Assembly: GCF_002113885.1 (NCBI RefSeq)
Contig: NW_018407210.1
Coordinates: 874,776-938,775, forward strand
From: Mizuhopecten yessoensis
Taxonomy: Eukaryota
DNA: 64,000 nucleotides
Direction of reading: 5' to 3'
Shown here one piece after another: positions 223 through 46,687 of the stretch (positions are counted from its first letter, which is position 1; each line of letters opens with the position of its first letter). The position numbers and the translations under genes are program-made. A model generated the notes under the pieces. That model was given only the letters and a program-made list of their open reading frames with translations. It did not search any database and had not been told where the DNA came from.

Positions 223-530
223 ACTGTACCTATCTCCCCCTACCGGGTATTTTGAGTGGTGATGTGACCTATCTCCCCCTACCGTGTATTTTGAGGGGTG
301 ATGTGACCCGCCTCCCCCTATCGGGTATTTTGAGTGGTGATGTGACCTATCTCCCCCTACCGGGTATTTTGAGTGGTGATGTGACCTGCCTCCCCCTACC
401 GGATATTTTGAGTGGTGATGTGACCTGCCTCCCCCTTTAATAGATTTCTTGGTATTTCGAGTGGTGATGTGACCTATCTCCCCCTACCGAGTATTTTGAG
501 TGGTGATGTGACCTGCCTCCCCCTTAAATA
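223..530. repeat. 39-bp minisatellite
   Basis: gtgatgtgacctatctccccctaccgggtattttgagtg repeated. Confidence 0.9.
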
Positions 531-556
531 GATTTCACTTTGTTATATTTGTCTAG

Positions 557-641
557 GTTTCACATCCACCCCCAGATCCAGTAGTCAGACACACTGAAGA
601 AGAAACCAAACCTCATCCAGTCACGAAGCGTGAAAAACCTG
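557..641 (+). CDS. SH3KBP1: CIN85/CD2AP-like gene, linker exon upstream of the third SH3 (VSHPPPDPVVRHTEEETKPHPVTKREKP+g)
   Basis: Acceptor tttgtctag and donor g|gtaagt; 85 bp open frame ending in phase 1, matching both the 1693 and 16014 acceptors. Confidence 0.75.
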
Positions 642-1692
642 GTAAGTCAACGCTGACACTTATGTTACTAACTATAGTAAGACATGTCAATGTACCTCTC
701 TGCTATTGTAACCTTAACCTAATTGTTAACATACACCACTTAGCAAAGTTCTATGGTAGCATCAGTAATGATCGTAAAAGTCTTCTTTGCTCTGATATAC
801 ATGTATTTCTTTTTGTTACACCTGCCTTAGCAACCCCTTATAGCGACTGTATTTAAACAAACCACAAAAGAACACTGTATAGTTTCCACCTGTACAATGT
901 TACCAGTGACTGGCTGTTTTGGTCCCAAATTGACCTATATGTAAAGCTATAACATTAAAATTGAATTGATATCAAACTTTGTACTTTTAGCAGTGGGTAC
1001 CTTGTCATACAGCACTAGTCACTGATGTAGATCTGTTGTCAAACTCATATTTATATCAGCACCTTTATACTCATATCCCTAACATTGTTTACTTCTATAG
1101 TAGCTACTAGTAGTATAAAAGCACATTTTTCTCAAAATGCTGATTGCCTGTTTAACCAACAATGAATATCGATTAGCATCATGTTGTCTCTAGAGAGGAA
1201 ATCAAAACAATTTAGTAATTTTCTTGTACCGTACATCATTAGAAATTGATTTGTCCAAGGGAATGAAGAAGGTACATCAGGTAATGAGAGAAAAGTGTGA
1301 TTTTGAAATGACTTACTTCTTCCATGATGTTGACCATTTTATTATCTTAACAGTTAAATTTGAGGGGGGAAATTTTAAGTCGAATGTGAAAATCCTGAAG
1401 AAATGTTCAGTCATGGGAGAAAGAGGTTTGTTGCTTGTGTTGAAGGGTTTCACAGGTTCTCCTCTGTCTCACATAAACATGGAATCCATTTTTGAAAATT
1501 ATCGATAATCCTCGGTATTCACAAGTAATTTCATCTGATGAAACTTTGCCTACAGTAGTATTACTAAGGTAGGAAAGGTGTTTTGTGTAGGGACATCTTG
1601 ACGAGACGTTGGGAGAAGCTGCGTGACTGATGGTGGTGCGTTTGGTGTACAGTGTAGGTGTGTATAGCTTGCATGTTTGATTTGCTCAACAG

Positions 1693-4600
1693 GTGTGCAT
1701 GACCTTACCCCCATTCCAGCACCCCGCCCATCCCAAGCATGTAGCCCCACCCCTCAGCCCAGAACTTATTACACTTCAGACTCCTATCCTGGGGACAAGG
1801 GCTCCCACAACTCAGACAAAAGCAGTCAGGAGAGCTCCCATACAGATCTGGAGGGGAGGGAAGGGGTGGAGGCTCAGGATAGCTGGGTCAATATCTTGTT
1901 TAGTGAGCAGGGATCAGATGATGAAAATGACAACAGAGAGGTGCAGTTTGAGCGTCTTGTGAAAAAAGAGAATGAGTCAGATGTAGATAAGGAGACAAAC
2001 CAGATACAAACAGATGATGTGATACAAGAAGGTGAAGAAATAAGTAACCAGTACCCATCCTACACCATCCGCTGTGGTCTGGATAAACTATCCCTCATGC
2101 AGCTCACACAAACAAAGGACTTGACCGAGGAGACACTGATAGAGTACGCAGATGTGGAAGTGGATGAAGAGAACAAGGAGAATATGATGTCAGGGAGATG
2201 TGTATCCGCCATAGCATCACTTGGGAGTGGAGGGAGTCGTACCTCAGTCCTAGTGTCAGGTAGACACAATACCAGTAATAACAACAATATACACATCAGC
2301 AATAATACAGAACTCAAGTCACACTCCAAGTCTGTCAACAGTTTAAAGTTAAATACGTCCATGGAGAAGCAGAACTTGGACAATTCTGTGTATAACACGA
2401 GAGTAGGGAGCTGGCTGTCAGATGATCACCAATCACCAACAGGCTCTGCCACCTCTGTGGCTGCAGTCTCCGGCAGAAAGAAGGAGTCGCTTTTTAAACG
2501 TGTCATCAAATTGGACATGTTTCGCAAGCGGTCCAAGTCAGTGATGCCCTACAATGGGAAGGACACAGAAGGAAAGCAAACTGAGATCTGTAAAAGACAG
2601 ATACCATCACTGACAGAACTCTGCAGGAACAAGTTGACACCAGACTGCCCAGATCCAGTTCGTACTCCTCTCAAGGAGATCACAAGTTCGCATGTCAATG
2701 AAGAGCAGGATCCTGATCAGTTAGGGTGCTTTGAAGTGTCAGTGGATTCCCTTGACAGGGTAGTGGGGAGTGAAGAAGCAGCCACTAAAAAGAAGACAAA
2801 TGCTATCCCAGAGATGTTCTCCGAGGACAGTGAATCACTCCTGACCATCATAATGAATCGGGACGATCTCAATAATGAGGAGGTCATCTGTAATAAGGAT
2901 GAGGACGGTGTTGGAGGTCAGTGTTCTGACATTCAAAATATTGCGAAAGGCTTAGCACTGGAAGGCGACCTGTATAACCCTGCAAGAGATGATCACAGAG
3001 ATAAGATAGCAAGGGACTCCTACCTAGGATCTCTCAACAGGACTGGCCAGTTGTCTCCCTTTATAAGAATGATTGCCAGTCGTTACCACTTGTTTGATCC
3101 TGTAACACAGAAATGGAAGGAGGGATACATGGATGGACCTGAGTACCTGGACTTGTCTGAAAGCTCTTCACCAGATTACCTTACTCAAGGCAGTCTCTCA
3201 CCAAACTCTGCTGTGAGTCAACAGGCAAGTCCCTGTCCTGTTCCTCTGGTGGCCACATGTTCACAGGTGCCACAGGTTGAGAACGATCAGCATCATAAGG
3301 CCTCCCCTATGTTACCAAGCTATAATATACTGCCTCCTGGCTCTGTGAAAGAGAAGGTCTTCCTCTATGAGCACCTCTATGTGAATGAGCTGGTAGATCA
3401 AGTGATTGAGCGGACGATGCATGGCCTCTGTGTAGAGCAGTGTCTGGAGGAGCTGGGAAAGTCAGGCCATCACCCAGAGTTATGTCGACAATTAATGATG
3501 GAATACAGTCAGTACAGTGAAGGCACGATTCCAGCCTCTCAAAGGTCTGAGGGGGAGATATCACCTCAGGGATCAGAAGTGGAGTTATCTCCTGAGGGAT
3601 CAGTAGGAGAGGTTATAACCTCTAAGGGATCTGATGGTGAGATATCTTCAGAATGTGAGGATGGCTGTATTCAGTCAAGTGAAATGTGTCAGAGTCAGAT
3701 TGAGTATTCTTTGTGCTCCGCCATTACCGATGTTGTCATGGACACAGATTACGCCACAGCCATGTCTGACATGGACACAGATGGGTCCTATGTGGTGTCT
3801 ACTCTCTCCAACGCAGACCTCAATACCAGCCTCCCTGAACCTGAAGACAGAGGTCAAACACCAGTAGGATTTAATGCCTCTGGGGAGTATGTAGACCTGC
3901 CAGAACAGCTGATACACTGCAGTGGCTATTATAACCACTCACACCCTGCAGTTAAGCCTTGTGATAATCCAGTACTACTACATCAAAAAAATATGGATGG
4001 TCCGTGGGTTTCGCCTGTTCACACACGACTCAGAATGGGCACAGGAGCATGTCCAAGGACGGATACGTTTCCACTCACACAGGATAGTCAGGATCTGTAT
4101 ACTCAGAGTTGTAGTATAGGAACCCAGACCCCAGACATTGTCGGTCGACCAACCACAGTCGACAACACCCCAACAAATAGATCAACAATCAGTTATGGGC
4201 TTGGTGTGTCTGGACACACAGAGGACCGAGCATCCTCTCCTATCAAGGAGCTACTGAGTTACGATACAACACTAGAGGACAGCTGGAATACCTCTGACCT
4301 TCTTGGGTCACCTGCCAAGGTCAAGGAAAGACCTCGTTACTCAAGCTCTCCTATTAAAACCTTTGTGGTGGAGGAAGATAAGAGAGGCAAGAGGAAGCTG
4401 GAGGATGTGAGTTACAAGCATGGCAAGGTACACTGCTCTGATGCCTGGCTGACAAGGAACCACAGTCTTCCCCGACGTGACAGAAGTAATCACTCTCTAG
4501 CATCAAGATCCTCGTCCCTGGATGTGAACACAGAGGAGACCTTCAATGTGCATGACTGTACAGAGAAAAGACGGAAACGTTTTTCCTGGAAGAAAATGTT

Positions 4601-6416
4601 CCAATCCAAAGTCAAGGAACCTGTTGTTCTTATCTCTTACAGGAAACGGTCAGACCAGGAGTTGGAGGAAGATCTGATAAAAGGCCCTCTAATCCTTAAT
4701 GAGGAGGGAAAAGATGTCTCAATGGAATCAGGGAGGACCAAACCTCTGAACTCTGGTAATCATGCTTTGTATGTTAATCAGGTACATCAAGACCATCCAT
4801 CAATATTCTATAGGACTAAGCCCTTCTCTGAGGACCTTAATACAGTGGAGACATTCTTCTCTCATGATCAGGATGAGCCCCATAGTCTTGATCAGTGCAG
4901 AACTCAAGGACCAGATATTCTCATTCAGGACAGAGTTCAGCTTTCCCAGGCTGCCCTCGAGGAGGAAGAAGGAGACGAGTCAGATGGAGAGCAATACAGT
5001 CTGTGTGACATGGAGATTGATGAGGAGGAGGAGCAGGCAAGGATTGAACGAGTTAGAGACACCAAGGGGCATTGTGGGCAGTGTGACCTTAGTGACCTTC
5101 ACATCCATGGTCAGGGTATGATGTCACAAAGTACTGCACATTCAGACATACTGGACCCCAGTAAGGAGGCTTGGAGAGCTGGCCCAAGTGGATTGAACCA
5201 GAAGTCCCTGCCTGATGAGGACAGTGATGATGAAGGTGACAGTGAGGGGGTGTCCCTAGACTCGCCCAACATCAGTCCCAGTCTCGCCATTGCCATTAGG
5301 AACAACATGGTTGCCACTCCTGAATCACCCGAGATTAACCTTGACTCGTTCCTACAGGAGGCGTTACGTCCTATTGATGACCTATTGGAAGAGTCAGCAG
5401 AGGGTGTCGATCTAGAAGAGGAGATAACTCCACGAATTGACAGCCATGTTCTTCATCCTTATACTTCAGAGTTACCTGAAAAATATCCAGGTTTTACATA
5501 CATCTCTCCCTCTATGGAAAACATCCTGGCTATGTATGAAGATGAGTCTCCTTACGAATCACAATATATCCAAAAGGGACAAGGGGATGTACTCGCAGCC
5601 AAAGATAGCTGTCAAGCTGAAACAGACACTAGCTCTTTGTCCCTAGAATATGTTCTGTGTCTAGAGAGGAAGTTCCAAGAGGAACTCGGTTCTGAGCTTG
5701 AATTCACACCACAAAATACTCCACTAAACACGCCACAGCACACACCGAGGGAAGATAACGTGGAAAGATATCCAAGTTTTACCTTTGTAGGAGAGGAGGT
5801 GTCACAAGCTGGCTGTTTTGGGGAAGTGTCTCTGGATTGTTGTGATAGAGAGGCAGGCAAGTCCAACCTGAGTAGCAGTGCTGAGGGACTGTATGACTAT
5901 GGTGAGGACACTTTCGAGAGCTCGGACAGTGAAGAAGAAAAAGAAGCTCGGACAGTAACTGAAAAAAGAAATGTTTATGTTCCAGTAGATGATAGCGAGG
6001 AAATTGAGGAAGTCATCGAGGTGGACTGTCCCCTTCACCAGTCTACAAATGATTCATTAGGATTGGATATCCAGAGTTTTCTAGATGGTACAAAAAGTGA
6101 AGAGTCCTACTTAGTGTTTGATTCGGACACGGAGAGGGTTCCATCCTTTATCACTGAGTATGTGAACATCCCGCCCACAGACCATCACACAGATATGCTT
6201 GGAGCATGTGCTCTGCCTACACTGGAAGATCAAGTGCAGAACCTAGAAAGGGGAGATAATCAGGATAGTATGGACCCAGATTCTAGAGGGCGCTCAAGCT
6301 ACTGCTTTTTAGGGCCATCAACAGAAGTGATAGAAGATAATGGACTCAGTGACAGTGGTCTACTTTTATCCTTCAGCTCCAGTCCAGACAGCTCCAGTAG
6401 TACCATTAATGTGTGA
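1693..6416 (+). CDS. Giant (~1574 aa) acidic, Ser-rich, probably disordered coding exon; putative alternative terminal exon of the CIN85/CD2AP-like gene
   Basis: Uninterrupted ORF 1677-6416; acceptor tttgctcaacag|gt at 1692/1693 gives g+gt=Gly in phase 1 with exon 557-641; starts with PIPAPR and PTPQPR; AATAAA at 8940-8945. Confidence 0.8.
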
Positions 6417-7795
6417 ACTACAACAATGACTCAGGACATAACATTGAAGTGTGAACTACAACAATAACGCAGGACATACCATTAATGTGTGAACTACAAC
6501 AATGACTCAGGACATATCATTAATGTGTGAACTACAACAATAACGCAGGACATACCATTAATGTGTGGACTACAACAATGACTCAGGACATACCATTAAT
6601 GTGTGGACTACAACATTAACTCAGGACATACCATTAATGTGTGGACTACAACATTAACTCAGGGCATACCATTAATGTGTGAACTACAACAATAACTCAG
6701 GACATACCATTAATGTGTGAACTACAACAATGACTCAGGGCATACCATTAATGTGTGGACTACAACAATAACTCAGGGCATACCATGAATGTGTGAACTA
6801 CAACAATGACTCAGGCCATACCATTAATGTGTGGACTACAACAATGACTGAGGACATACCATTAATGTGTGGACTATAACAATGACTCAGGACATACCAT
6901 TACTGTGTGAACTACAACAATAACTCAGGAAATACCATTAATGTGTGAACTACAACAAGGCCTCAGGACATACCATTAATGTGTGGACTATAACAATGAC
7001 TCAGGACATACCATTACTGTGTGAACTACAACAATAACTCAGGGCATACCATGAATGTGTGAACTACAACAATGACTCAGGGCATACCATTAATGTGTGG
7101 ACTACAACAATGAATCAGGACATACCATTAATGTGTGAACTACAACAAGGACTCGGGACATACCATTAATGTGTGAACTACAACAATAACTCAGGACATA
7201 TCATCAATGTGTGAACTACAACAATAACTCAGGACATACCATTAATGTGTGGACTACAACACTAACTCAGGACATACCATTAATTTGTGAACTACAACAA
7301 TGACTCAGGACATTCCATTAATGTGTGAACTACATCAATGACTCAGGACATACCATTAATGTGTGGACTACAACACTAACTCAGGACATACCATTAATGT
7401 GTGAACTACAACAATGACTCAGGACATTCCATTAATGTGTGAACTACAACAATAACTCAGGACATACCATTAATGTGTGAACTACAACAGTGACTCAGGA
7501 CATACCATTAATGTGTGAACTACAACAATGACTCAGGACATACCATTAATGTGTGAACTACAACAATAACTCGGGACATACCATTAATGTGTGAACTACA
7601 ACAATGACTCAGGACATACCATTAATGTGTGAACTACATCAATGACTCAGGACATACCATTAATGTGTGAACTACAACAATAACTCAGGACATACCATTA
7701 ATGTGTGAACTACAACAATGACTCAGGACATACCAGTAATGTGTGAACTACATCAATGACTCAGGACATACCATTAATGTGTGAACTACAACAAC
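6402..7795. repeat. 38-bp minisatellite (~36 copies) whose first unit includes the giant ORF stop codon
   Basis: accattaatgtgtgaactacaacaatgactcaggacat. Confidence 0.95.
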
Positions 7796-8342
7796 AGTTT
7801 GTACTGTTACTAACCTTTGGCTGTATTCATATGATTCTGTACTTTAACTTACCTATGGCTGTAATTATAAGAGTTTACTATGTACCTAAACTTTGGCTCT
7901 AATCATATCAGAAAGCTGTGACTAAAATTTTGCTGTACTCATATCTGTTTGTACTGTAACTTAACTATGGCTTTAATCATAACAGTTTTAACTGTAACTA
8001 ACCTTTGGCTGTGAAAATACCAGTAAACTGTACCTTAACTTAGGCTATTATCATATCAGCTTGTAATGTAACTTAAGAATTGGTGTTATCATATCAGTTT
8101 GTACTGTAACTAAAGAATTGCTGTAATCATATCAGTTTGTACTGTAACTAAAGAATTGCTGTAATCATATCATTTTGTACTGTAACTAAAGAATTGCTGT
8201 AATCATATCAGTTTGTACTGTAACTTAAGAATTGCTGTAATCGTATCAGTTTGTACTGTAACTAAAGAAGTGCTGTAATCATATCAGTTTGTACCGTAAC
8301 TTAAGAATTGCTGTAATAATACCAGTAAGCTGTAACTTAACT
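7796..8342. repeat. Diverged 38-39-bp minisatellite
   Basis: cagtttgtactgtaactaaagaattgctgtaatcatat. Confidence 0.85.
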
Positions 8343-8939: not shown

Positions 8940-8945
8940 AATAAA
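8940..8945 (+). terminator. Candidate polyadenylation signal for the giant-exon isoform
   Basis: AATAAA after an AT/U-rich UTR-like stretch, followed by T-rich sequence. Confidence 0.4.
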
Positions 8946-9055: not shown

Positions 9056-10415
9056 GGTGATTTTACAGATAACTGATAATTTCAGTAATGCAGTGATTTT
9101 ACAGATAATGGATAATTTCAGTAATGCAGTGATTTTACAGATAACGGATAATTTCAGTAGTGCAGTGATTTTACAGATAACGAATAAATTTCAGTAATGC
9201 AGTGATTTTACATACAATGGATAATTTCAGTAATGCAGTGATTTTACAGATAACGGATAATTTCAGTAATGCAGTGATTTTACATATAATGGATAATTTC
9301 AGTAATGCAGTGATTTTACAGATAACGAATAATTTCAGTAATGCAGTGATTCTACAGATAATGGATAATTTCAGTAATGCAGTGATTTTACATATAACGG
9401 ATAATTTCAGTAATGCAGTGATTTTACAGATAATGGATAATTTCAGTAATGCAGTGATTTTACATATAATGGATAATTTCAGTAATGCAGTGATTTTACA
9501 GATAACGAATAATTTCAGTAATGCAGTGATTTTACAGATAATGGATAATTTCAGTAATGCAGTGATTTTACATATAAGGGATAATTTCAGTAATGCAGTG
9601 ATTTTACAGATAATGGATAATTTCAGTAATGCAGTGATTTTACATATAATGGATAATTTCAGTAATGCAGTGATTTTGCATATAACGGATAATTTCAGTA
9701 ATGCAGTGATTTTACCAATCTGATTAAAATCATATGTTACATGGCTTCGTTAACTTCGTACTGCACCTGAACATCTGAGTGTGCCGCGGTCAGGGTCACG
9801 TTCAGGTGACCTTTATATTTATAAATACTCATTAAGTTTTGACCAATCAGAGACCCTCTTTCAAAAGGGCGCTCGGAGTTGTAACAAATAGGTCGGACAT
9901 TGATGAGAATGATGCGAAAGTTATTTCAGATTGATCGTCTGAAACCCAAACAGAAAAAAGATATTCGAAGCTTTATTACAGAAGAAAGACTGAAACCCAA
10001 ACAGAAAAAAGATATTCGAAGCTTTATTACAGAAGAAAGACTGTATGGCGGTGTTGCCTACGCAATTATTACCCAATGGGTACGTTTTCCTTGTCGTCGT
10101 AGAAACGTCAGTTCCCGCTGCCATATTTGTTTTGGAAAACTAATCTGTTCGTTTCCCCTCGCTATTTATCCATCAACCATGATATTCCAATTCGCTGGCA
10201 AACTTTTGCCAGCGCGCCTCTGATTGGTTCATCTAAAGGTCACTTGAACGTGACCCTGACTGGGCACATTCAGATGTTCAGGCGGAGCCATGTAACAGAT
10301 GATTTTAATCAGATTGTGATTTTACATATAACGGATAATTTCAGTAATGCAGTGATTTTGCATATAACGGATAATTTCAGTAATGCAGTGATTTTACAGA
10401 TAATGGATAACTTTG
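9056..10415. repeat. 36-bp minisatellite interrupted by the TIR element; followed by a 21-bp repeat to ~10582
   Basis: gataatttcagtaatgcagtgattttacagataatg. Confidence 0.95.
9716..10316. mobile_element. Non-autonomous TIR DNA transposon, AcademH-like, with RecQ-helicase remnant
   Basis: Imperfect TIRs >100 bp (CAATCTGATTAAAATC...GATTTTAATCAGATTG); 9-bp TSD tgattttac at 9707-9715 and 10317-10325; internal frameshifted FQIDRLKPKQK/IFEALLQKKDCMAVLPT. Confidence 0.75.
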
Positions 10416-12579
10416 GTAATGATGATGATGACAACAATGATTTCACTGATGACAACAATGATTTCACTAATGACAATGATTTCACTGATGACAACAATAC
10501 AACAATGATTTCACTGATGACAACAATGATTTCACTGATGACAACAATGATTTCACTGATGAAGACAATGATTTCACTGATGCTAATTTTATGATTGTGA
10601 TGATTTGAGAGGTAATTGTTATTTCAGAGGTGATACTGATTTCACCAATGATGATAGTTATAATTTACTGTGATAAGTGACCACCATTCACCATTGGGAT
10701 TCTATCTCTGATACTTGTAATTTACTGGTGAGGTAGTGTTTACCACTGGGGAAAAAGGTTACCAGTGAAAATGATATTACCCAGTAAAGTTAATGAATGA
10801 TGTTCCATTGAGGTTAATGTTGAACTGATTGGCTGCCACTGTCAACCTCCTGATATGTCCGGACCGTACACTGATCATAGCTTTAGTGATTCAGTTCTGT
10901 CAGCCATAAAAGCAGGAACAGACACAAAAACACATTCCTATACGTGTTAAACTGGTACCTTAGGGCTTCACAATTAGTAAAGTTTGCTACATTATATATG
11001 GTCAATAGATAGCCTCATTGGACAAAAATGGGTTTTATCTAGTGTAAATATGGTATCTTTGACTATTGTGATTAATTAAAAGATGAACAGGTTGTATGGT
11101 AGAAGTTTCCACCTTTTGACACAGGTAAAAGGTGTGTACAGTGGATAAAGATGGGCCTGTTATCTATGGTAAATATGGTATTTGACTATTATGACTAATT
11201 ACAGACAGGTTGTATAGTAGAAGTATTTACCTTTAGACACGGGTATATGTAATAGATGTGTATGGAGATGGGCTCGTTATCTACGGTAAATATGGTATCT
11301 GTGACTGGGTACAAATCACCTGGTGTGTATCTTGGGGTCAAACTAACGATTTATTAGTCCATGTTATAAAGGTTGAGTGGACAGAGAATGTTAATTTACA
11401 TAATATATAAAACCACACCCTCTCTAGGTCTCACACAGACGGGAGACATCTGCAGTGATCAATTCCTTTAAACAATATGCAGATCTAATTTTAATGTCCT
11501 AACTGGTGCTTCTATAATTATATACACATTCCAGGTAATCTGAGATCACCTGTAACATTCGTTTTTAAGTTTTTTTGCAGTAACTATGATGACTACCTTG
11601 CTATATATACAGGTTAGATGTTCTCTGTGTAATAAACTCCCACTATTGTCAGCCTCCCTCCATACTTAGATTTTTGTCCTTTAGCAGTCCTCACGATGTG
11701 ACTTGTCTCACAACAGTCCTAATGGTGACTCCTCCTGATCATTTCACATAGTGATAAATGTCTTGCATACTAAACCCTTATACATCGCATAAACGATGTA
11801 AAGACAATTCCTGGATAGGCATTGGTTTCTTCCTGTGCATGTACTGTACAGGAAACGTGTCTGACCCAAAGTTGGCTTTGATTTCCTGACTTTTTAGATA
11901 TAGAGAGGCTGCTGTTTCTAGTAATAAAATTACTTCTTGATATGAAGGAGCCTCACTGAATCAGCTGTCATAACAATGTAATACTAAGAGAAAAGTCATA
12001 AATAGTACTTAACCCTGGACGGAACAGACTTTAGTGTTGACAATCAACTCCTTCAGACCTTGACCTAGGTTCCGGTAAGAGGATGTGGTAAATCAGGGTA
12101 CCGGTGGTGACAGTGGGATCAAGTGTGTATTAATGTGATCCATAACATGGAGGACTGATGGAAGTTACAGGGTGTTACAATACATTCTTGACCACTGGCT
12201 GATGATAGGTAATGCAGGCCTAACAACTGGTCATTTCATCCTGTCTGTCCCAGAGGAGAAGGAAGTTTTCTTTAGTGGACATCCCAGAGAAGATAACAGC
12301 TGGTCAGCCTGCTCCAGTACCATACCGCTGCCACTAACAGGATTTGGTACATAGCTCCTACCACTGGAGTATCTAACCACTGGGACTATTGACGTGCATT
12401 CTAGCAGTCTTCAATTGATTATCAGGTTTTCATAGGAGATGATGCATGTGTGATTGTTGGTATTGTGAGGAGACATTAGAAATCCCTGTCTACCTGGAGT
12501 AGTAATATATCAGGACTAGTGGAGCCTTTGTCACCTACACAAGGCCGCCTCAGTGTTGTGTCAGACCAACTGTTCTGTG

Positions 12580-13070: not shown

Positions 13071-13722
13071 GTAAGTACTCGTGTTAATGTTCTGTTGGTT
13101 TCAATGTTGACTATCAGTTATGGTTGATTTTGTGTTCTCCATTTTATCCCAGTATTCTAGCCTGTTTATGGTTTTCCACTCAGCTGTACGTGTATAAGGT
13201 ACAAATGGTTAATGTGGGACAAGAATTAAAAGATGGATCTTTAACAGAAATAAAATATTTCTAAAGCAAGCCATGATGTGTTATAACTACAGTGTATATA
13301 CATCATGTGAATCTTAAGCTGTTATACAGTTTGTCTTTTGGTTGGGAACATATTTGTATTGTCAGGATCATGTTGGGAATTTTGGGCTTTTTATTGTCAA
13401 CTTCCTTTTACCGAAATAACCCAAATTGATTACATTTAACAAATTTTAAGAAATGCTATGCTCATTGGTGTGGAAGTTACTGTCTGCTTAAGCTTAATGA
13501 CATACACAGGGAGAGATCAGCATGGTTTTGCTGAGTTGATATGGCTACAGGCAGAAGGGATTCTTAGTAGATGAGTGCCATGTGATCAATATTCTTAATT
13601 CATTATGAACCTTCACCCGGAAGGCTTATCACCCAACTTCTCTCTGATGTGTTATAGTGCTGATTTGTCTGGGGCTCCATACAAGGGGGCAGGGTTTTAT
13701 CTTATTCACATAGGATTTCTTA

Positions 13723-16013: not shown

Positions 16014-16198
16014 TGGATAAAGCTGTGGTGCGTTATTCATACACGGCAGACAACGAAGACGAGCTGACCCTACAGGAAGGGGAGATCGTGACAATCCTAG
16101 ACAAGGAACTGGAAGACGCAGGATGGTGGAAGGGTGAGGTGAATGGTCGAGTGGGTGTGTTCCCCGACAACTTTGTGGAGGATTTACCATCAGAAGAG
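16014..16198 (+). CDS. SH3KBP1: SH3 domain exon (probably SH3C) of the CIN85/CD2AP-like adaptor
   Basis: AVVRYSYTADNEDELTLQEGEIVTILDKELEDAGWWKGEVNGRVGVFPDNFVE has the SH3 hallmarks (ELT, GWW, G.FP.NFV); ttacag| and gag|gtaagt. Confidence 0.95.
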
Positions 16199-20979: not shown

Positions 20980-23129
20980 AATTCAACTTTTATTCCTTAA
21001 GTTTGACAACTTATTGGATAACTATACTTTACAATAAATTACAAATGATATATACGTATATGTATTGTGCAGTCAACACTCATTATCACTCCCACATCAT
21101 TATTGTGCATTCAACAATTATTAACGCTCTCACATCATCATGTACTCTGTCCCCTATGTAATACAATAACCAGATGTCCTTTGTCTGTACCTACCAACAC
21201 TGTATCTTAGCCTGGTGCGCATCTTCATCCTGTTCTGTCACTCTTGTATGTGTTAATCAGATAAAATAACCCAATATGTATACTGTCACATGCAACTGAC
21301 AAAGTAGAAAATGTTGCTGAAATTTGTTTCTTACCTTAATCCTGTTTTACTAAGGTTTATCCAGTTCCATCCATAAGAATACTTCACATAGCATAAGTTA
21401 TATCTACAATTACCACACGACACACACCCAGCAACAGTTACCACATGTCAGCATTTTAACATTTAATTTGAAACATTTGACAATAATTATGTGAATGTCA
21501 CGGATGGGAAGTAGTTTAATATAATATCCTGATGACGTTTAGTCATGCTTTCTTCCTTCTTCATACCCTTCTCTCCCCTATACGGACATTATAAACTGAA
21601 CCATTGGTTAGAGGGACAATGTTATTAGTCATGTGGAGGGTGATGGAGGTCTGTCCAAAGTCCCTGTCCTCCCTATAGATATAAAAACCAATGACAGTGT
21701 AATATATATACTTGTGTGAAGTGTATAGAGGATGTTACTCCGAGGGTTATCCCCATGAACACCATTCAGAACTACTGTAAACAACCATGTGCACTAACTC
21801 TGACACATGGAAGTCAATATGGTTTTGAATTACAAAGATTCACCTTTCATATAAACTTCATGAATCTCAGCTGTTCGTGACCTTTTTTTCAGTTTATTAT
21901 TTCCAATACCACACATTGACCTTCCACTCCTGGTCTTTATATATATCCCTGTTTAGTGTCAAGTTCTCCAGTATTAGCATCCTCATTCCCAGGTGAAAGC
22001 CCCACTTAAGCTGTGTATGTATTTAGATAAGTGTTAGTGCCGTTTTTACACTAAGTACGTATTTAGTAGGCGTTGTTGTGATCTCCACCTGGGATTTTGA
22101 GATGGGTATCGTTGGATGTTGTGTTTTATGCCGTATTGCATGAGGTACCCTATATGGCCAAGTTCGATCACCAACTTCAGTTATTCTGGTCTAGCTAGAA
22201 TATGTTTGAACTCACTTTGGTAAAATGTAATGTGCATGTGTAAAGAAACACGTTTGCATTTTTAAACGACTATGGTATAACATGGTTTGCTTTGGTCAGA
22301 CCAAAACAGCTAGTCATCATCTGTACCTATGTAATTATTTGGTTATTTTTTTTATAAGCATTTGTTGTTGCATTAGATGTAGCAGACCGCCCATGGTAAA
22401 TGGTTGGTGATCAAGCTCGGCCTAATCACTGCATTAGATATGACGCCGACCATAGTAAATGGTTGGTGTTCAAGCCTGGCGTGTATCAATGCCTTGATGT
22501 CTTTAGGTTGCTGCATGTTGTAGAAGGCAACTGTTTGTATATTAGAATTGTCTATTTTATTATCAGTTTTATTTGTTTTAAGTTATCACATCTTTAAGAT
22601 TTGTTTATTATGTATAATGATAATGATGATAAGAAATTTAGAACTGACATCCAAATATGCATGGGCATTGGGTAGTTTACCTGCCAAGTTCAAGTTAAAC
22701 ACTATAGATCAACACTGTTTATTCCTGACACCACTCACAAGGTACTGACCATAATGGTCAATCCAGAAGAAAGACAAAATCTATGGTACGGAGATAACAA
22801 TGAGAAGGTATAATTTGGTGAAGACCAGGAAGTGATGATCATCTGTTATTAATTCCATCAGGGTTGTTGTATTAGTTGTGAAGCCGTTGTTGTTTTCGTG
22901 CACTCCTTCTGGTTCTTTGTCGTTTTCTGTGCTGTACAAGTAACATCTACAGCTTCTAATAGCTGGTTATTTTGAATACTAAGGATACAAAATACTCCAT
23001 TCAACTGTTAAAGGTGGAAAGGTCATCGTCCTCCCAAATTGACATTATTTTCTGGTGAAAAGTTTATCACCACAAACAAAAATCTGTTATAAACATTATA
23101 CCAAGGTAGACTTTAAACTAGCTACACAA

Positions 23130-23450
23130 TGCTGTATTATTTCTGGAGAGAGAACCGTGTAAGATAGACTTAACTGGCTACACAACACTATTGCTATTTC
23201 TGGGGAGAGAACCGTGTAAGATAGACTTAACTGGCGACACAACACTATTGTTATTTCTGGGGAGAGAACCGTGTAAGATAGACTTAACTGGCTACACAAC
23301 ACTATTGTTATTTCTTGGGAGAGAACCGTGTAAGATAGACTTAACTGGCGACACAACACGATTGTTATTTCTGGGGAGAGAACAGTGTAAGATAGACTTT
23401 TAACTGGCTACAGAACATTGTATTTTTTTCTGGGGAGAGAACATTGTAAG
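23130..23450. repeat. 57-bp minisatellite
   Basis: tttctggggagagaaccgtgtaagatagacttaactggc... Confidence 0.9.
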
Positions 23451-25366
23451 GTTTTACTGTATACTGGGAACCTTTCACCCAGTCAAATATTAGCCCTCCA
23501 CTGGTGAATCAGTATTTGCTCAATGTCAATTATGCTCTCCACACGTAATTGCTATATATGTGGTATGTTGGGTACTAATATTCGTTATTATGATAAATGT
23601 GCCCTCATTACAGATGTCGAAAAAAAGCGGGCGGAAAATAGTGGCAAAAAACTCAGTACTTCCTTATTTTTATCTGATTTCACTCGTAAGCCAGCTAACA
23701 TCCGTCCTATGTAGTTGTGTATGTGTATCCGACTGATTACTTGGTCACAGAATGATTGCCCTTTTTTGTACCTCCTGACAACCAGTCCTCCCTTGTTCCA
23801 TTTCTATGAAACTTGGTAACAGTTAATTACCATCCTCTGTCTTTCAACAACACTGTTCCAATAAATGAAAGAGGGTGCACATGATGTATAGAAGGAAAAA
23901 GGTGGGTATTTAACCTTTGACTAACAGTTCCAGTATTGTTTCAGTCAGAAGGTGCACACATGATGTCTCAAGGATGTGTCCTGCATCAGTCTGCCCTACA
24001 TATAACTGCCATGTAAGACGGTGTACCAGCTAATTGCTCCGGGCTAATTGTGGCTAGAGGACACACATGTATACATTTTGTAGCTGTATTTAGGGGGAGT
24101 GACAACAGTCCGTCGCCTGACTTTATCACTTTCCCAGTATCTGGACAGAATGATATGTGTTACTGACAATGGTTCAGATTGTTCCTGGTCAGGATGTGAT
24201 AGAAGGATTAGAAGTTCATAAGGATTAAAGGTCTAAAGGTCCACTGTTGATTTGTGTATGACAGGAGGTGATCGTAGAAGTTACAAGTCCACTGTTTGAG
24301 TTGTGGGGTGTGTTTCTGACAGAGACAGGATACGTCTTGCGTGTGGTACATCAGATTACTAGAGGAGGTTCACTACAACAGGAGATTCATTCAATTGTGA
24401 TGAAGTTCTAAAACATCTGATTTACAACTATAACCCACAGCAAAACTTGTTTGAAGATCTGTTGTTTTTTTTCTCTCAGTAAAGTTCAGCACTTTCAGAA
24501 AATCTACAAAGTTGATGTGGAGGTTTGGAGACATGGACTAAGTTTCAGTGTATAGAACTGTGAGAAAAGCCCAATATGGAAAAGTGTGGAGAAAACGCGT
24601 CCAGTTATGACTGTATGATCAGTTATTACTGTAGTCATACTGTCAGGGAATAGGAATCCGTTCAACAAGAGACAGAGATCAGTGAACCTCTGATATAAGG
24701 GTATAAGGATAGAAATTATTCTATTACCATATCTGGAGCCAGCCTGAATTAGCATTGCTGGGGGCCTTGTGGAAGGAGTCTTGTGTGAGACACTGGAATG
24801 TATAGGAACTGTGTCGAATATCTTCTCCATACTACGCAACACGATAGTCTGGATACAAATTTTGTAAACCTGACAGTTTGTCAGATGTTCTATGTGACTT
24901 TGTACAAGTGTTCATTGTGATTTAATGTCATACAGACACCAGAAAGTTATGTATCAGTGAAAGACTGTTGTCCATCACTTGAGTGCTGTCTGATAGATCG
25001 CCATGTCTTCTGGTGAAGAATCCAGTCCAACACCATCCCGACCGGTCGTACCTCCTTACTTCCTCTTTCACCCTATACCCAGTTCTCTTTTACATCGTTT
25101 AGATTAACCAAACTGGCACCATATTAATGCTTGTAATAAATCGGTTTTATACTTATATTTAAAAAAAAATTCTCCTAAATGTTTGGAATAAATCGACATA
25201 AACTGGGTAAAAAGTAGATAAGGTCATGCTAGGGCTTTGTCCCCTGACACATAATGTCATGGGGAATTTCTCCTGCTTTAAGGTATTAAAAAAAAACACC
25301 AGATGACGTGATATTGGGTTATACACATGTCCTGTTTTTGGTAGAGTACATACTACATGTCTACAA

Positions 25367-26348
25367 GGTATATAAGTGTAGTGACTGTAGACCAGGAGGT
25401 CTGCCTGGTGAGATATCCGTGTTTGTACTGTACCCTCCCCAGGTATATAAGTTTATTGACTGTAGACTAGGAGGTCTGGCTGGTGAGATATCCGTGTTTG
25501 TACTGTACCCTCCCCAGGTATATAAGTTTATTGACTGTAGACTAGGAGGTCTGTCTGGTGAGATATCTGTGTATGTCCTGTACTCTCCCCAGGTATATAA
25601 GTTAAGTGACTGTAGACCAGGAGGTCTGTCTGGTGAGATATCCGTGTTTGTACACTCCCCAGGTATATAAGTTTAGTGACTGTAGACTAGGAGGTCTGTC
25701 TGGTGAGATATCCGTGTTTGTACGGACACTCCCCAGGTATATAAGTTAAGTGACTGTAGACCAGGAGGTCTGTCTGGTGAGATATCTGTGTTTGTACTGT
25801 ACGGACACTCCCCAGGTAAATAAGTGTAGTGACTGTAGACCAGGAGGTCTGTCTGGTGAGATATCTGTGTATGTCCTGTACACTCCCCAGGTATATAAGT
25901 TTAGTGACTGTAGACCAGGAGGTCTGTCTGGTGAGATATCCGTGTTTGTACGGACACTCCCCAGGTATATAAGTTTAGTGACGGTAGACCAGGAGGTCTT
26001 TCTGGTGAGATATCCGTGTTTGTACTGTACGGACACTCCCCAGGTATATAAGTTTAGTGACTGTAGACCAGGAGGTCTGCCTGTTGAGATATCTGTGTAT
26101 GTCCTGTACACTCCCCAGGGATATAAGTTTAGTGACTGTGGACCAGGAGGTCTGTCTGGTTAGATATCCGTGTTTGTACTGTACAATCCCCAGATATATA
26201 AGTTTAGTGACGGTAGACCAGGAGGTCTGTTTGGTGAGATATCCATGTTTGTACTGTATACTCCCCAGGTATATAAGGTTAGTGACTGTAGACCAGGAGG
26301 TCTGTCTGGTGAGATATCCGTGGTTGTACTGTATGGACACTCCCCAGG
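25367..26348. repeat. ~70-80-bp minisatellite
   Basis: ccccaggtatataagtttagtgactgtagaccaggaggtctgtctggtgagatatccgtgtttgtac. Confidence 0.9.
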
Positions 26349-27055
26349 AATCAATAGAAACTCAAGGTGATCTGTACCTATATAGTCATCAAGCCAGCTG
26401 TATGAGGAATCAATATTTAATGGGAGAAATGCTCTGTCTGCTGTTGTTAGATAAACATGAATTATGAAATTTTATACAGAATGTACACATAATATTTTCA
26501 AAATAAGAAAAGAATTAAAACAACATAGTCCCCTTATATATCTATTCTCTCTCCAATTTTCTGCCAGCATTTTCACAGGTATGTATACATTGGCCATTGT
26601 CTTGAGGTATTCAAGTCTATCTTGTCATAACTTCCCCTATTATTTGACATTTTGTTATCCTTGTCAGGATTTTGTTTGATTTAACTGATCCGTTAGGTCT
26701 GTGTCCATATTTGTGTTTCTTTACATATATCATTAAGAAAAATTGTCAGATTCAGATCATTAAAGTATTGTACATGTACTTACAGTTTGGTTGCTTTGTA
26801 TGCATGACAACTCACAGGTAACTAATTGTAGTTTCAGATCCTGTGGCCTGTCCAATGTTATATATTACTGTAGAATTTCCCAGGTCAATGCTAGGCCTGT
26901 TACAGCATGAGTTGCATATGGTCTGTGTGTCTGTAAAACCTCTAATGATGTATAACATTAATTTGTGACCTTTTTCTACAGAACTTGACCCTGTAAAACT
27001 AAATTACCTTCACAATGTAGAATCATATGTGACCATGACTTTGCCTGTATTACAG

Positions 27056-27206
27056 CCACGCCCCAAGAAGCCCCCACCACCGGGGTCCACAAAGCAGGCT
27101 CCCAAGCTGCCAGAGAAGGCCCCAGTGTCAGATACAGCCAAACATGACAAACATGACAAGCCACTTCCACCAGAGCCTGCTGCAGACAAAGCCAAGAAAA
27201 AGGAGG
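27056..27206 (+). CDS. SH3KBP1: Pro-rich exon (PRPKKPPPPGSTKQAPKLPEK...DKAKKKE+g)
   Basis: tattacag| phase 0 start matches the SH3 exon end; donor g|gtaagt phase 1 (first of many duplicated donors). Confidence 0.85.
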
Positions 27207-28132
27207 GTAAGTCCCAGCTAATTATAGACAAAGCCAAGAAAAAGGAGGGTATACGTAAGTCCCAGCTAACTATAGACAAAGCCAAGAAAAAGGAGGGCAA
27301 GTCCCAGCAAACTATAGACAAAGCCAAGAAAAAGGAGGGTAAGTCCCAGCTAACTCTAGACAAAGCCAAGAAAAAGGAGGGTAAGTCCAAGCTAACTCTA
27401 GACAAAGCCAAGAAAAAGGAGGGTAGGTCCCAGCTAACTCTAGACAAAGCTAAGACAAAGGAGGGTAAGGCCCGGCTAACTATAGACAAAGCCAAGAAAA
27501 AGGAGTGTAAGTCCCAGCTAACTCTAGACAAAGCCAAGAAAAAGGAGGGTAGGTCCCAGCTAACTCTAGACAAAGCTAAGACAAAGGAGGGTAAGTCCCG
27601 GCTAACTATAGACAAAGCCAAGAAAAGGAGGGTAAGTCCCAGCTAACTCTAGACAAAGCTAAGACAAAGGAAGGTAAGTCCCGGCTAACTATAGACAAAG
27701 CCAAGAAAAAGGAGTGTAAGTCCCAGCTAACTCTAGACAAAGCCAAGAAAAAGGAGGGTGAGTCCCAGCTAACTATAGACAAAGCCAAGAAAAAGGAGGG
27801 GAAGTCCCAGCTAACTTAAGTCCCAGCTAACTCTAGACAAAGCCAAGAAAAAGGAGGGTGAGTCCCAGCTAACTATAGACAAAGCCAAGAAAAAGGAGTG
27901 TAAGTCCCAGCTAACCCTAGACAAAGCCAAGAAAAAGGAGGGTAAGTCCCAGCTAACTCTAGACAAAGCTAAGAAAAAGGAAGGTAAGTCCCGGCTAACT
28001 ATAGACAAAGCCAAGAAAAAGGAGGGTATACGTAAGTCCAAGCTAACTATAGACAAAGCCAAGAAAAAGGAGGGTAAGTCCCAGCTAACTTAAGTCCCAG
28101 CTAACTCTAGACAAAGCCAAGAAAAAGGAGGG
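27184..28132 (+). repeat. 42-bp minisatellite (~22 copies) containing the exon end and splice donor
   Basis: agacaaagccaagaaaaaggagG|GTAAGTcccagctaactct. Confidence 0.95.
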
Positions 28133-29342: not shown

Positions 29343-29446
29343 ACACATTTGATAACATGGAAACATCTGACCGGTTGACCCACCTGACTGCCAGCAGAGC
29401 CAAAGGTCCAAGCAAGCGACCGCCATCACAAGTAATGTTCCACAAC
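29343..29446 (+). CDS. SH3KBP1: Exon containing the CPI/CARMIL-homology capping-protein-binding motif (LTHLTASRAKGPSKRPPSQ)
   Basis: Matches the LxHxTxxR(P/A)K(x6)P motif of CD2AP/CIN85; acceptor ttttctgtatag; phase-0 donors after 29431 (gtaatg) or 29446 (gtgagt). Confidence 0.9.
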
Positions 29447-46207: not shown

Positions 46208-46424
46208 CTTCTAATAAACTACAAGAATAACTTATTGCTCCTTCGCCTGTTGTGATTGAATCTACTTTACGATGTTCTCACTTTTACTCAATCCCCTGCA
46301 TACTTTCGGGTATCCAGACGAGGAGCAAAGGACCAAATTATTCCACCATTAAGAAAACCACGGCATTGGCTCTACCCTTGCCTTATCTTTTCACATTGGT
46401 TTATTTTCTGTTGTCTGTCCTCAG

Positions 46425-46687
46425 GGAACGCCATGCTGCTGTCTGCCATAGAAGAACTCAAGAAGGAAATGCGAGAGTTACGGGCAACATGTGCTTCTAA
46501 ATCAGCAATTGATGAACTGCGCAGCGAAAATGAGAAATTACGAATGGAAGTTGAACACATGCGAAGTAAACAATCGCGACAGATAAAAGACTTAATGGCA
46601 GAGGTGGACGAAGAGAAAAAGATTCGACTAAACACACAAGTGGAGGTTGAACGAATCCGCAAACTTCTCACTGAGTCACATGTGTGA
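46425..46687 (+). CDS. SH3KBP1: Terminal exon: C-terminal coiled coil of CIN85/CD2AP
   Basis: ctgtcctcag| phase 1; ...QIKDLMAEVDEEKKIRLNTQVEVERIRKLL resembles the CIN85 C-terminus (DEEKKIRL); stop TGA. Confidence 0.92.

Follow-up and report, generated by a model that had tools for sequence, protein, structure and literature searches.

A probable giant alternative last exon in a scallop CIN85/CD2AP orthologue, with a candidate kinase-anchoring helix

We analysed a 64,000-nucleotide stretch of the genome of the scallop Mizuhopecten yessoensis (contig NW_018407210.1, positions 874,776 to 938,775 of the forward strand; hereafter the window, with position 1 at its first letter), in which a 4.7-kb stop-free frame lies inside an intron of LOC110454287, a gene of the CIN85/CD2AP adaptor family. 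This frame very probably serves the scallop CIN85/CD2AP orthologue as a genuine alternative 3'-terminal exon: it is spliced and expressed, is present as a single copy, evolves under purifying selection and occupies the same intron position in one distant lineage. One donor serves two mutually exclusive acceptors, and use of the nearer, terminal exon stops translation ahead of the third SH3 domain, SH3C. A preliminary description of the window had proposed an alternative last exon that swaps the C-terminal half of the adaptor, and this proposal is supported by junction-spanning contigs, by RefSeq gene models and by the placement of the canonical parts downstream.

Splicing, selection and age of the giant exon

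On the + strand the frame is free of stops from 1668 to a TGA at 6414-6416; the window's listing of open reading frames (ORFs) enters it as 1677..6416, with 1,579 codons and a TTG at 1677 as its first start-type codon. The acceptor, ..tgctcaacAG followed by GTGTGCAT, is cut between 1692 and 1693 in phase 1, placing the exon start (1693) 16 nt past this TTG and the opening of the frame 25 nt ahead of the acceptor, and leaving a coding part of 1,574 codons plus TGA (1693-6416, + strand). The upstream exon (557-641, + strand), a constitutive linker exon of both isoforms that contains the motif PDPVVR, ends in ..AAACCTG followed by the donor GTAAGT, likewise in phase 1, and phase 1 is common to the giant exon and to the SH3C exon (16014-16198, + strand), whose acceptor competes with it in the canonical isoform. 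The G+C content of the frame is 0.44-0.50, against 0.29-0.38 in the flanking intron. Past the stop, the earliest AATAAA on the + strand, a presumed poly(A) signal, stands at 8940-8945. The preliminary description had read each of these elements correctly from the letters: the long ORF with its own stop, the acceptor 16 nt inside it with the phase of the SH3 exon, and the downstream AATAAA.

Sequencing reads and contigs were mapped to positions 520-6500 of the window (5,981 nt). In each of runs X1 and X3, Logan contigs from two different studies whose type as RNA is presumed, one contig links 555-640 to 1692-3144 with the cut between 641 and 1693, skipping the 1,051-nt GT..AG intron at 642-1692 (+ strand), which is thereby spliced out of giant-exon transcripts; the join of 641 to 1693 that the preliminary description had asked for is therefore found in contigs of two studies. 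Contigs tile the frame up to 6387 in X1 and 6414 in X3, and the X1 junction contig, the only one in that run to cover exon 557-641, extends upstream into sequence coding for the SH3B-linker part of P0001, the giant-exon protein. Word depth in X1 is as high over the frame as over the upstream exon and is zero over 720-1519, as RNA would give if the presumed run type is correct. In X19 and X24, raw RNA-seq runs of 2026, 13-14 reads each splice 641 to the SH3C exon at 16014 and the frame is nearly read-free; the linker exon is covered in all four runs. No X1 contig carries the canonical 641-to-16014 junction, and X3 has both junctions. Because X1 shows only the 1693 junction, X19 and X24 the 16014 junction and X3 both, acceptor choice is strongly sample-dependent. 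The giant exon is also contained in a contig of an Argopecten irradians gill metatranscriptome (SRR23580857; PMC10989825). Separately, X1 and X3 each contain one contig whose match to the window begins at 5091 or 5420, its earlier part being absent from the window; these contigs may reflect words shared with another transcript, or may be chimeric.

The same structure is already present in automatic gene models. RefSeq lists LOC110454287 as an 'uncharacterized protein' with isoforms X1 (1,821 aa; XP_021359390-92) and X2 (1,805 aa; XP_021359394), both of which run through SH3A, SH3B and the linker exon into the frame by the exact 641-to-1693 junction and end at the same stop, and isoform X1 of Pecten maximus LOC117328250 has the same architecture. 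Isoform X2 lacks 48 nt (1962-2009; 16 codons) that are kept in isoform X1 and in the contigs of run X3 as well as run X1. We considered and rejected an intron at this site; since GT..AG ends are absent at every equivalent position and no joint appears in reads, the gap is probably an allelic indel rather than a product of splicing.

Residues 1-170 of P0001 find their best matches in the SH3 domains of SH3KBP1 and CD2AP (E 4e-21 to 1e-14), in accord with the RefSeq models and with the proposed family identity and retention of the upstream SH3 domains. By sequence, then, the gene is a member of the CIN85/CD2AP family and the giant-exon product an architecturally non-canonical isoform of it: P0001 consists of SH3A and SH3B followed by the giant exon, and so departs from the full family architecture of three SH3 domains, a proline-rich region, a capping-protein-interacting (CPI) motif and a coiled coil. 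The parts proposed to be lost all lie past the giant exon. Besides SH3C, these are a CPI-type motif at 29375-29425 (+ strand), which is the single match in the window to the consensus LxHxTxxR(P/A)K..P and belongs to the canonical isoform, and a possibly coiled-coil-like exon within the frame 46256-46687, which ends in a charged, heptad-like stretch. The proline-rich, basic exon region of the canonical isoform at 27029-27646 is a tandem repeat with a 13-residue unit (DKAKKKEGKSQLT-like), and its opposite strand is open too. Runs of N occur in the window near 30.1 kb and at 38.5-39.3 kb.

The frame is single-copy and is not a transposon. A 566-residue piece of it has one match in the 988-Mb genome, and a look for multi-copy, transposase or reverse-transcriptase character yielded this one genome match and no Pfam family; the multi-copy transposon that would have overturned the original proposal did not appear. 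It is also under purifying selection. By the Nei-Gojobori method, the ratio of non-synonymous to synonymous substitution rates (dN/dS) is 0.32 and 0.23 against the first and second pieces of the Pecten frame, whose split is described below, and 0.235 against Argopecten irradians, so the expectation of a ratio below 1 holds in both genera. At a dS against Pecten of ~0.8, every 150-codon window of the Mizuhopecten-Pecten comparison gives a dN/dS of 0.13-0.50. The stop-free length together with dN/dS values of 0.23-0.32 against two other genera implies that the frame is not open by chance.

More distant relatives were recovered with a HMMER profile, built from the scallop sequences and P0004, that was scored against 1.84 billion representative proteins. 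Beyond the input, it returned P0005 (1,283 aa), P0007 (1,510 aa), P0008 (1,500 aa; a cluster of 18), the short Argopecten piece P0006, and P0009, whose cluster includes P0024 (1,563 aa); no named protein of any other phylum was found in this search, and word-indexed protein searches with P0004 and with the family alignment A3 added no further relatives. The P0008 cluster contains one 79-aa fragment labelled transposase by its source. The long relatives are single frames on short contigs, at 17-29% identity and in four lineages, and an AG acceptor in phase 1, with a pyrimidine tract, stands at the opening of each relative's frame. On the contig of P0005 (L012), CIN85-like SH3B and linker exons lie upstream of the frame and an SH3 exon downstream, which indicates that the intron position is conserved in a distant lineage, as the preliminary description had suggested testing. 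By these sequence comparisons the exon is older than the scallop family.

Conserved motifs and a candidate anchoring helix

The giant-exon protein has an isoelectric point of 4.5, with 18% Asp+Glu and 12% Ser. Its description as ~1570 aa of acidic disorder thus holds for composition, and the stretches that were modelled are mostly of low confidence; the protein is not featureless, as ~10 short motifs survive across lineages at 17-29% identity. AlphaFold2 models were made for two stretches, residues 425-640 and 850-1300 (667 of the 1,574 residues). The first contains helical elements at 435-464 and 552-609 with a predicted local distance difference test score (pLDDT) of 83-89, its remainder falling below 50 and its predicted template modelling score (pTM) being 0.27; the second has a mean pLDDT of 42.7 and is confident only at its LDSFLQEAL..DDLL motif. 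The pTM of both models is 0.27 or less. Pfam searches with the whole frame, five sub-segments, P0004, P0005, P0007, P0008 and P0009 found nothing above noise, the best scores (Calpain_u2, E 0.014; DUF7301, E 0.045) being far below the cut-offs. The Pfam and structure checks proposed earlier have therefore yielded short conserved helices and no Pfam domain. A feature search of the ESM Atlas scored no higher than 0.80, with AMER3, APC and other long disordered proteins of this kind as its matches, a level of recognition below the useful range.

The motifs are distributed along the whole exon (all on the + strand). Near its start, at 1710-1763, are two PxxxPR motifs (PIPAPR and PTPQPR), the type of ligand bound by CIN85/CD2AP SH3 domains; PIPTPR is kept in Pecten and Argopecten, and the motif is absent in the distant relatives. 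The family's most conserved motif, YLGSLN..G..SPFIR.IA..Y.LF (2994-3095), has eight invariant columns in eight sequences and is predicted to form short helices (pLDDT 85-88). It is followed by the amphipathic helix YVNELVDQVIERTMHGLC (3378-3431; residues 563-580), which is considered below, and by RPRYSSSPIK (4329-4358), common to 4 of the 5 distant relatives and having the cross-lineage form KPRYSSSPI. The motifs DY.TAMSDMDTD and SLDSPN also survive across lineages. A polybasic motif, EKRRKRFSWKKMFQSKVKEP (4563-4622), is kept in every lineage in the form EKR(R/K)KRFS(W/F)K, and we take it, by its resemblance to known sites, to be a candidate membrane- or calmodulin-binding and phosphorylation site. 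The LDSFLQEALRPIDDLL motif (5340-5387) reads LDSFLQEAL.PIDDLL across lineages and is the sole confident stretch of the 850-1300 model, predicted helical with pLDDT up to 85. Toward the end come a first (E/D)(K/R)YP(G/S)F motif (5478-5510) and a second, RYPSF (5766-5789), with the shared cross-lineage form (K/R)YP(S/T)F. The C-terminus itself, T-I-N-V plus stop (6402-6416), is hydrophobic-x-Val, being TINV in three scallop genera, TVDV in P0004 and AIDV in P0007, and looks like a class II PDZ ligand.

Residues 563-580 raise the possibility of kinase anchoring. The helices by which A-kinase anchoring proteins (AKAPs) bind protein kinase A (PKA) are amphipathic, 14-18 residues long and hydrophobic at positions 2, 5, 6, 9, 10, 13, 14 and 17, and in anchors selective for the type I regulatory subunit (RI) position 1 is F or Y and the Ala of position 2 is nearly invariant (PMC12083921). 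In the scallops, P0004, P0007 and P0008, the helix is hydrophobic at 1-2, 5-6, 9-10, 13-14 and 17, and thus shows the register that defines AKAP helices (PMC12083921); each protein has this register a single time, at the homologous site, and it arises in 3-5% of shuffled sequences. AlphaFold2 predicts the helix with pLDDT 83-89, and each of the four lineages has Y or F at position 1. We also docked a 48-residue segment holding the helix onto two copies of the RI docking domain from the scallop's own genome. The median in silico score was 0.55, in the tool's weak-support range, against 0.03 for the best control, with at least 82% contact agreement among runs and the partner at a pLDDT of 64 or more. 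Among solved complexes, 51 of 78 attain the tool's mark for a positive result, against 2 of 108 mismatches; at scores of 0.60 or less, only 5 of the 78 solved complexes attain it, as do all 4 of the mismatches that passed. Ranking by hydrophobic moment was non-discriminating, as it places the helix first in P0007 and P0008 and not in Mizuhopecten or P0004.

Several observations weigh against PKA anchoring. Position 2 is V or I, departing from the Ala of RI-selective anchors, and the register is missing from P0005 and P0024. The AKAP models of Pfam gave no match at E up to 10, and PDB sequence and profile searches with the helix, also at E up to 10, returned no AKAP peptide; the sole matches, Tctex dynein light chains and botrocetin, were not significant. 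The docking pass falls in the range just described, with the tool itself warning of possible memory of solved AKAP complexes, and a register of this kind arises in any helix that packs on another surface. The most specific mechanism that we favour for the tail, held as possible if doubtful, is that helix 563-580 binds a PKA regulatory subunit, or a related RIIa-fold protein, at its dimerisation/docking domain. A broader proposal builds on such docking, in which the giant exon would represent an undescribed A-kinase/RIIa-fold anchoring family, present only as a CIN85/CD2AP alternative terminal exon in molluscs and perhaps other invertebrates, and would in certain tissues switch an endocytic/actin adaptor to a membrane-targeted PKA-anchoring scaffold; we regard this as rather unlikely.

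We give an even chance to the alternative that the isoform is real and selected while the helix is no PKA anchor, serving instead another partner or internal packing within a tail that scaffolds unrelated partners. The failure of AKAP families and solved AKAP peptides to match by sequence, the low range of the docking score and the two relatives without the register all fit this account, as do the nearest language-model neighbours, AMER3 and APC, which are generic long disordered scaffolds and, at 0.80 or less, a lead only. It fits less well with a register that is kept in four lineages at 17-29% identity, with an aromatic position 1 and a helical prediction, or with a docking score far over those of the controls. 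The likeness that we presume between the polybasic motif and MARCKS/AKAP12-type basic sites, and between the helix and disruptor peptides, is not used as evidence on either side.

Two further observations concern PKA regulatory subunits in this genome. A PKA type II regulatory subunit (RII) is encoded at L011 (G000:C447:53694-53804 onward) in an uninterrupted 373-codon frame that includes the docking domain, the RRQSV inhibitor site and cyclic-nucleotide-binding sequence; this copy, being intronless, is possibly a retrogene. Another RII-like docking domain lies within L006.

Interrupted copies and other readings of the frame

Against a full-length product in all scallops stand, first, the limits of the transcript evidence: that X1 and X3 are RNA is a guess, and the presumed poly(A) signal at 8940-8945 falls beyond the mapped 520-6500. 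Second, the frame is interrupted in both other scallop genera. In Pecten maximus, two extra bases in a TG run (L003 24545-24552) split it into frames 22340-24568 and 24550-27015, and the RefSeq model ends there at 982 aa; the 821 codons downstream are open, with a dN/dS of 0.23, and the 2-nt insertion reflects an error of assembly or else an allele that is truncated. In Argopecten irradians, two in-frame stops lie in the last third of the exon, a TGA where Mizuhopecten has Cys (L004 13067-13069) and a TAA where it has Ser (13382-13384), and both recur in the independent gill metatranscriptome contig, which is 97.3% identical (L018 1239-1241 and about 1554-1556).

Past the second Argopecten stop, these two haplotypes, of the assembly and the gill contig, differ by 15 synonymous and 8 non-synonymous changes, a ratio of non-synonymous to synonymous polymorphism (pN/pS) of 0.145 (Fisher p 5e-6); translation may continue in this region, or the changes may have arisen before the stops did. 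Readthrough, editing, separate translation and very recent loss are candidate explanations. The Argopecten assembly also has one base fewer, in a C run, between the conserved acceptor and PIPTPR (L004 10020-10045), and the conserved acceptor would consequently be out of frame; judged from the sequence, a phase-1 AG at 10063-10064 could serve as a substitute. The breaks in Pecten and Argopecten leave the Mizuhopecten exon unaffected, and they show that some of the scallop genomes sampled lack an intact full-length tail.

These interruptions, and the lack of any known domain, would fit a by-product of intronic polyadenylation, a truncated transcript carrying a long frame with no function as protein. 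We consider this highly improbable, as 1,574 codons have stayed open at a dS of ~0.8 with selective constraint in every window, and the motifs and C-terminal residues are kept at 17-29% identity. Equally improbable is an independent gene nested in the intron, with its own promoter and occasional splicing to the host gene. Its appeal lies in a separate Argopecten annotation (P0002), which treats the frame as a stand-alone protein, and in the X1 word depth, which over the frame equals the height of the upstream exon; yet the sole X1 contig on exon 557-641 is joined to 1693 and extends upstream, the frame opens 25 nt before the acceptor with its first in-frame ATG only ~140 codons in, phase-1 acceptors are present in all relatives, and RefSeq joins the frame to SH3 exons in two genera. 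It is hardly credible, too, that the frame derives from a transposon, occurs in several copies or is an internal cassette exon, as the tandem repeats flanking the stop and the transposase label of the P0008 cluster might suggest, given that the label belongs to a 79-aa fragment, that the 566-residue piece matches the genome once and Pfam not at all, and that the stop and last residues are kept across lineages, with database models ending at the same stop. We thus reject the transposon, nested-gene and cassette-exon readings on copy number, junction contigs and the conserved acceptors and stop.

The repeats themselves begin at the end of the coding region. A 38-nt tandem array of 36.7 copies with 91% match (6401-7794, + strand) opens the 3' untranslated region (UTR), and because its unit holds the last four codons plus the stop (ACCATTAATGTGTGA), the C-terminus is itself part of the array's first copy. 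Next in the presumed 3' UTR (7795-8326, + strand) comes another 38-nt array, with 14 copies. Word depth in X3 climbs to ~38,000 at 6320-6500. The Pecten maximus 3' UTR (L003 27022-28213) contains 38-46-nt arrays with related words. In the intron past the presumed poly(A) site, 36-nt tandem arrays at 9057-9715 (18 copies) and 10316-10421 (3 copies) yield spurious frames with repeated 'DNFSNAVIL'.

A second output of an adaptor gene

Work on CIN85/CD2AP adaptors centres on cell junctions, receptor endocytosis and actin capping, and it holds their C-terminal half essential for oligomerisation and capping-protein binding. With an alternative last exon as the preferred reading of the frame, joining donor 641 to acceptor 16014 gives the canonical adaptor, and joining it to acceptor 1693, followed by presumed intronic polyadenylation, gives SH3A-SH3B-linker plus 1,574 residues. 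The giant-exon isoform thus retains the client-binding SH3A and SH3B while giving up SH3C, the proline-rich region, the capping-protein motif and the oligomerising coiled coil, and has in their place an acidic and largely disordered tail bearing short conserved motifs. We infer that such an isoform would be unable to bind capping protein or to oligomerise through the coiled coil, and might act as a monomeric scaffold that brings SH3A/B clients to a different set of partners. Its own PxxxPR motifs could fold back on SH3A/B, the polybasic motif and the hydrophobic-x-Val end hint at recruitment to the membrane or the cell cortex, and, should helix 563-580 bind a PKA regulatory subunit, a prospect that we hold only tentatively, the isoform would be an A-kinase anchoring protein.

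The gene belongs to the same family as CIN85/SH3KBP1, CD2AP and Drosophila Cindr, as suggested by the best matches of SH3A and SH3B and by canonical exons that encode SH3C, a CPI-type motif and a coiled-coil-like end. Described isoforms in this family come mostly from alternative promoters, which remove N-terminal SH3 domains and keep the C-terminus, whereas the scallop gene swaps the whole C-terminal half by means of a 4.7-kb alternative last exon. It resembles other intronic-polyadenylation isoforms in that one donor picks either a proximal terminal exon or distal exons, with a shared N-terminus and a sample-dependent choice, and differs from them in the unusual length of its proximal exon, in the purifying selection on that exon and in its age, which exceeds that of the scallop family. 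AKAP11 and SPHKAP are long disordered AKAPs encoded largely by one giant exon. The giant-exon protein is similar to AKAPs as a long, acidic and mostly disordered scaffold with one helix in the AKAP register and an aromatic position 1 of the RI type, and is unlike them in having no detectable homology, Val or Ile rather than Ala at position 2, and a binding prediction that is in silico and weakly supported. We know of no AKAP that is an alternative exon of an SH3 adaptor gene.

A full-text literature search found no paper on LOC110454287 or LOC117328250, nor one linking CIN85/CD2AP with kinase anchoring in this sense. The preliminary claim of an unknown isoform therefore stands as far as published description goes and fails for annotation, where the frame was already in automatic models as an 'uncharacterized protein'; what is new is the evidence on splicing, selection, age and motif content. 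The isoform is lineage-restricted and undescribed in the searchable literature, and its anchoring function is putative. If the helix does anchor PKA, the exon would encode an invertebrate anchoring protein that is invisible to homology searches. With a conserved isoform that discards the C-terminal half of a CIN85/CD2AP adaptor for a 1,570-residue platform of motifs, this gene has a second, unstudied output in molluscs, for which PKA regulatory subunits, PDZ proteins and the isoform's own SH3 domains are candidate partners.

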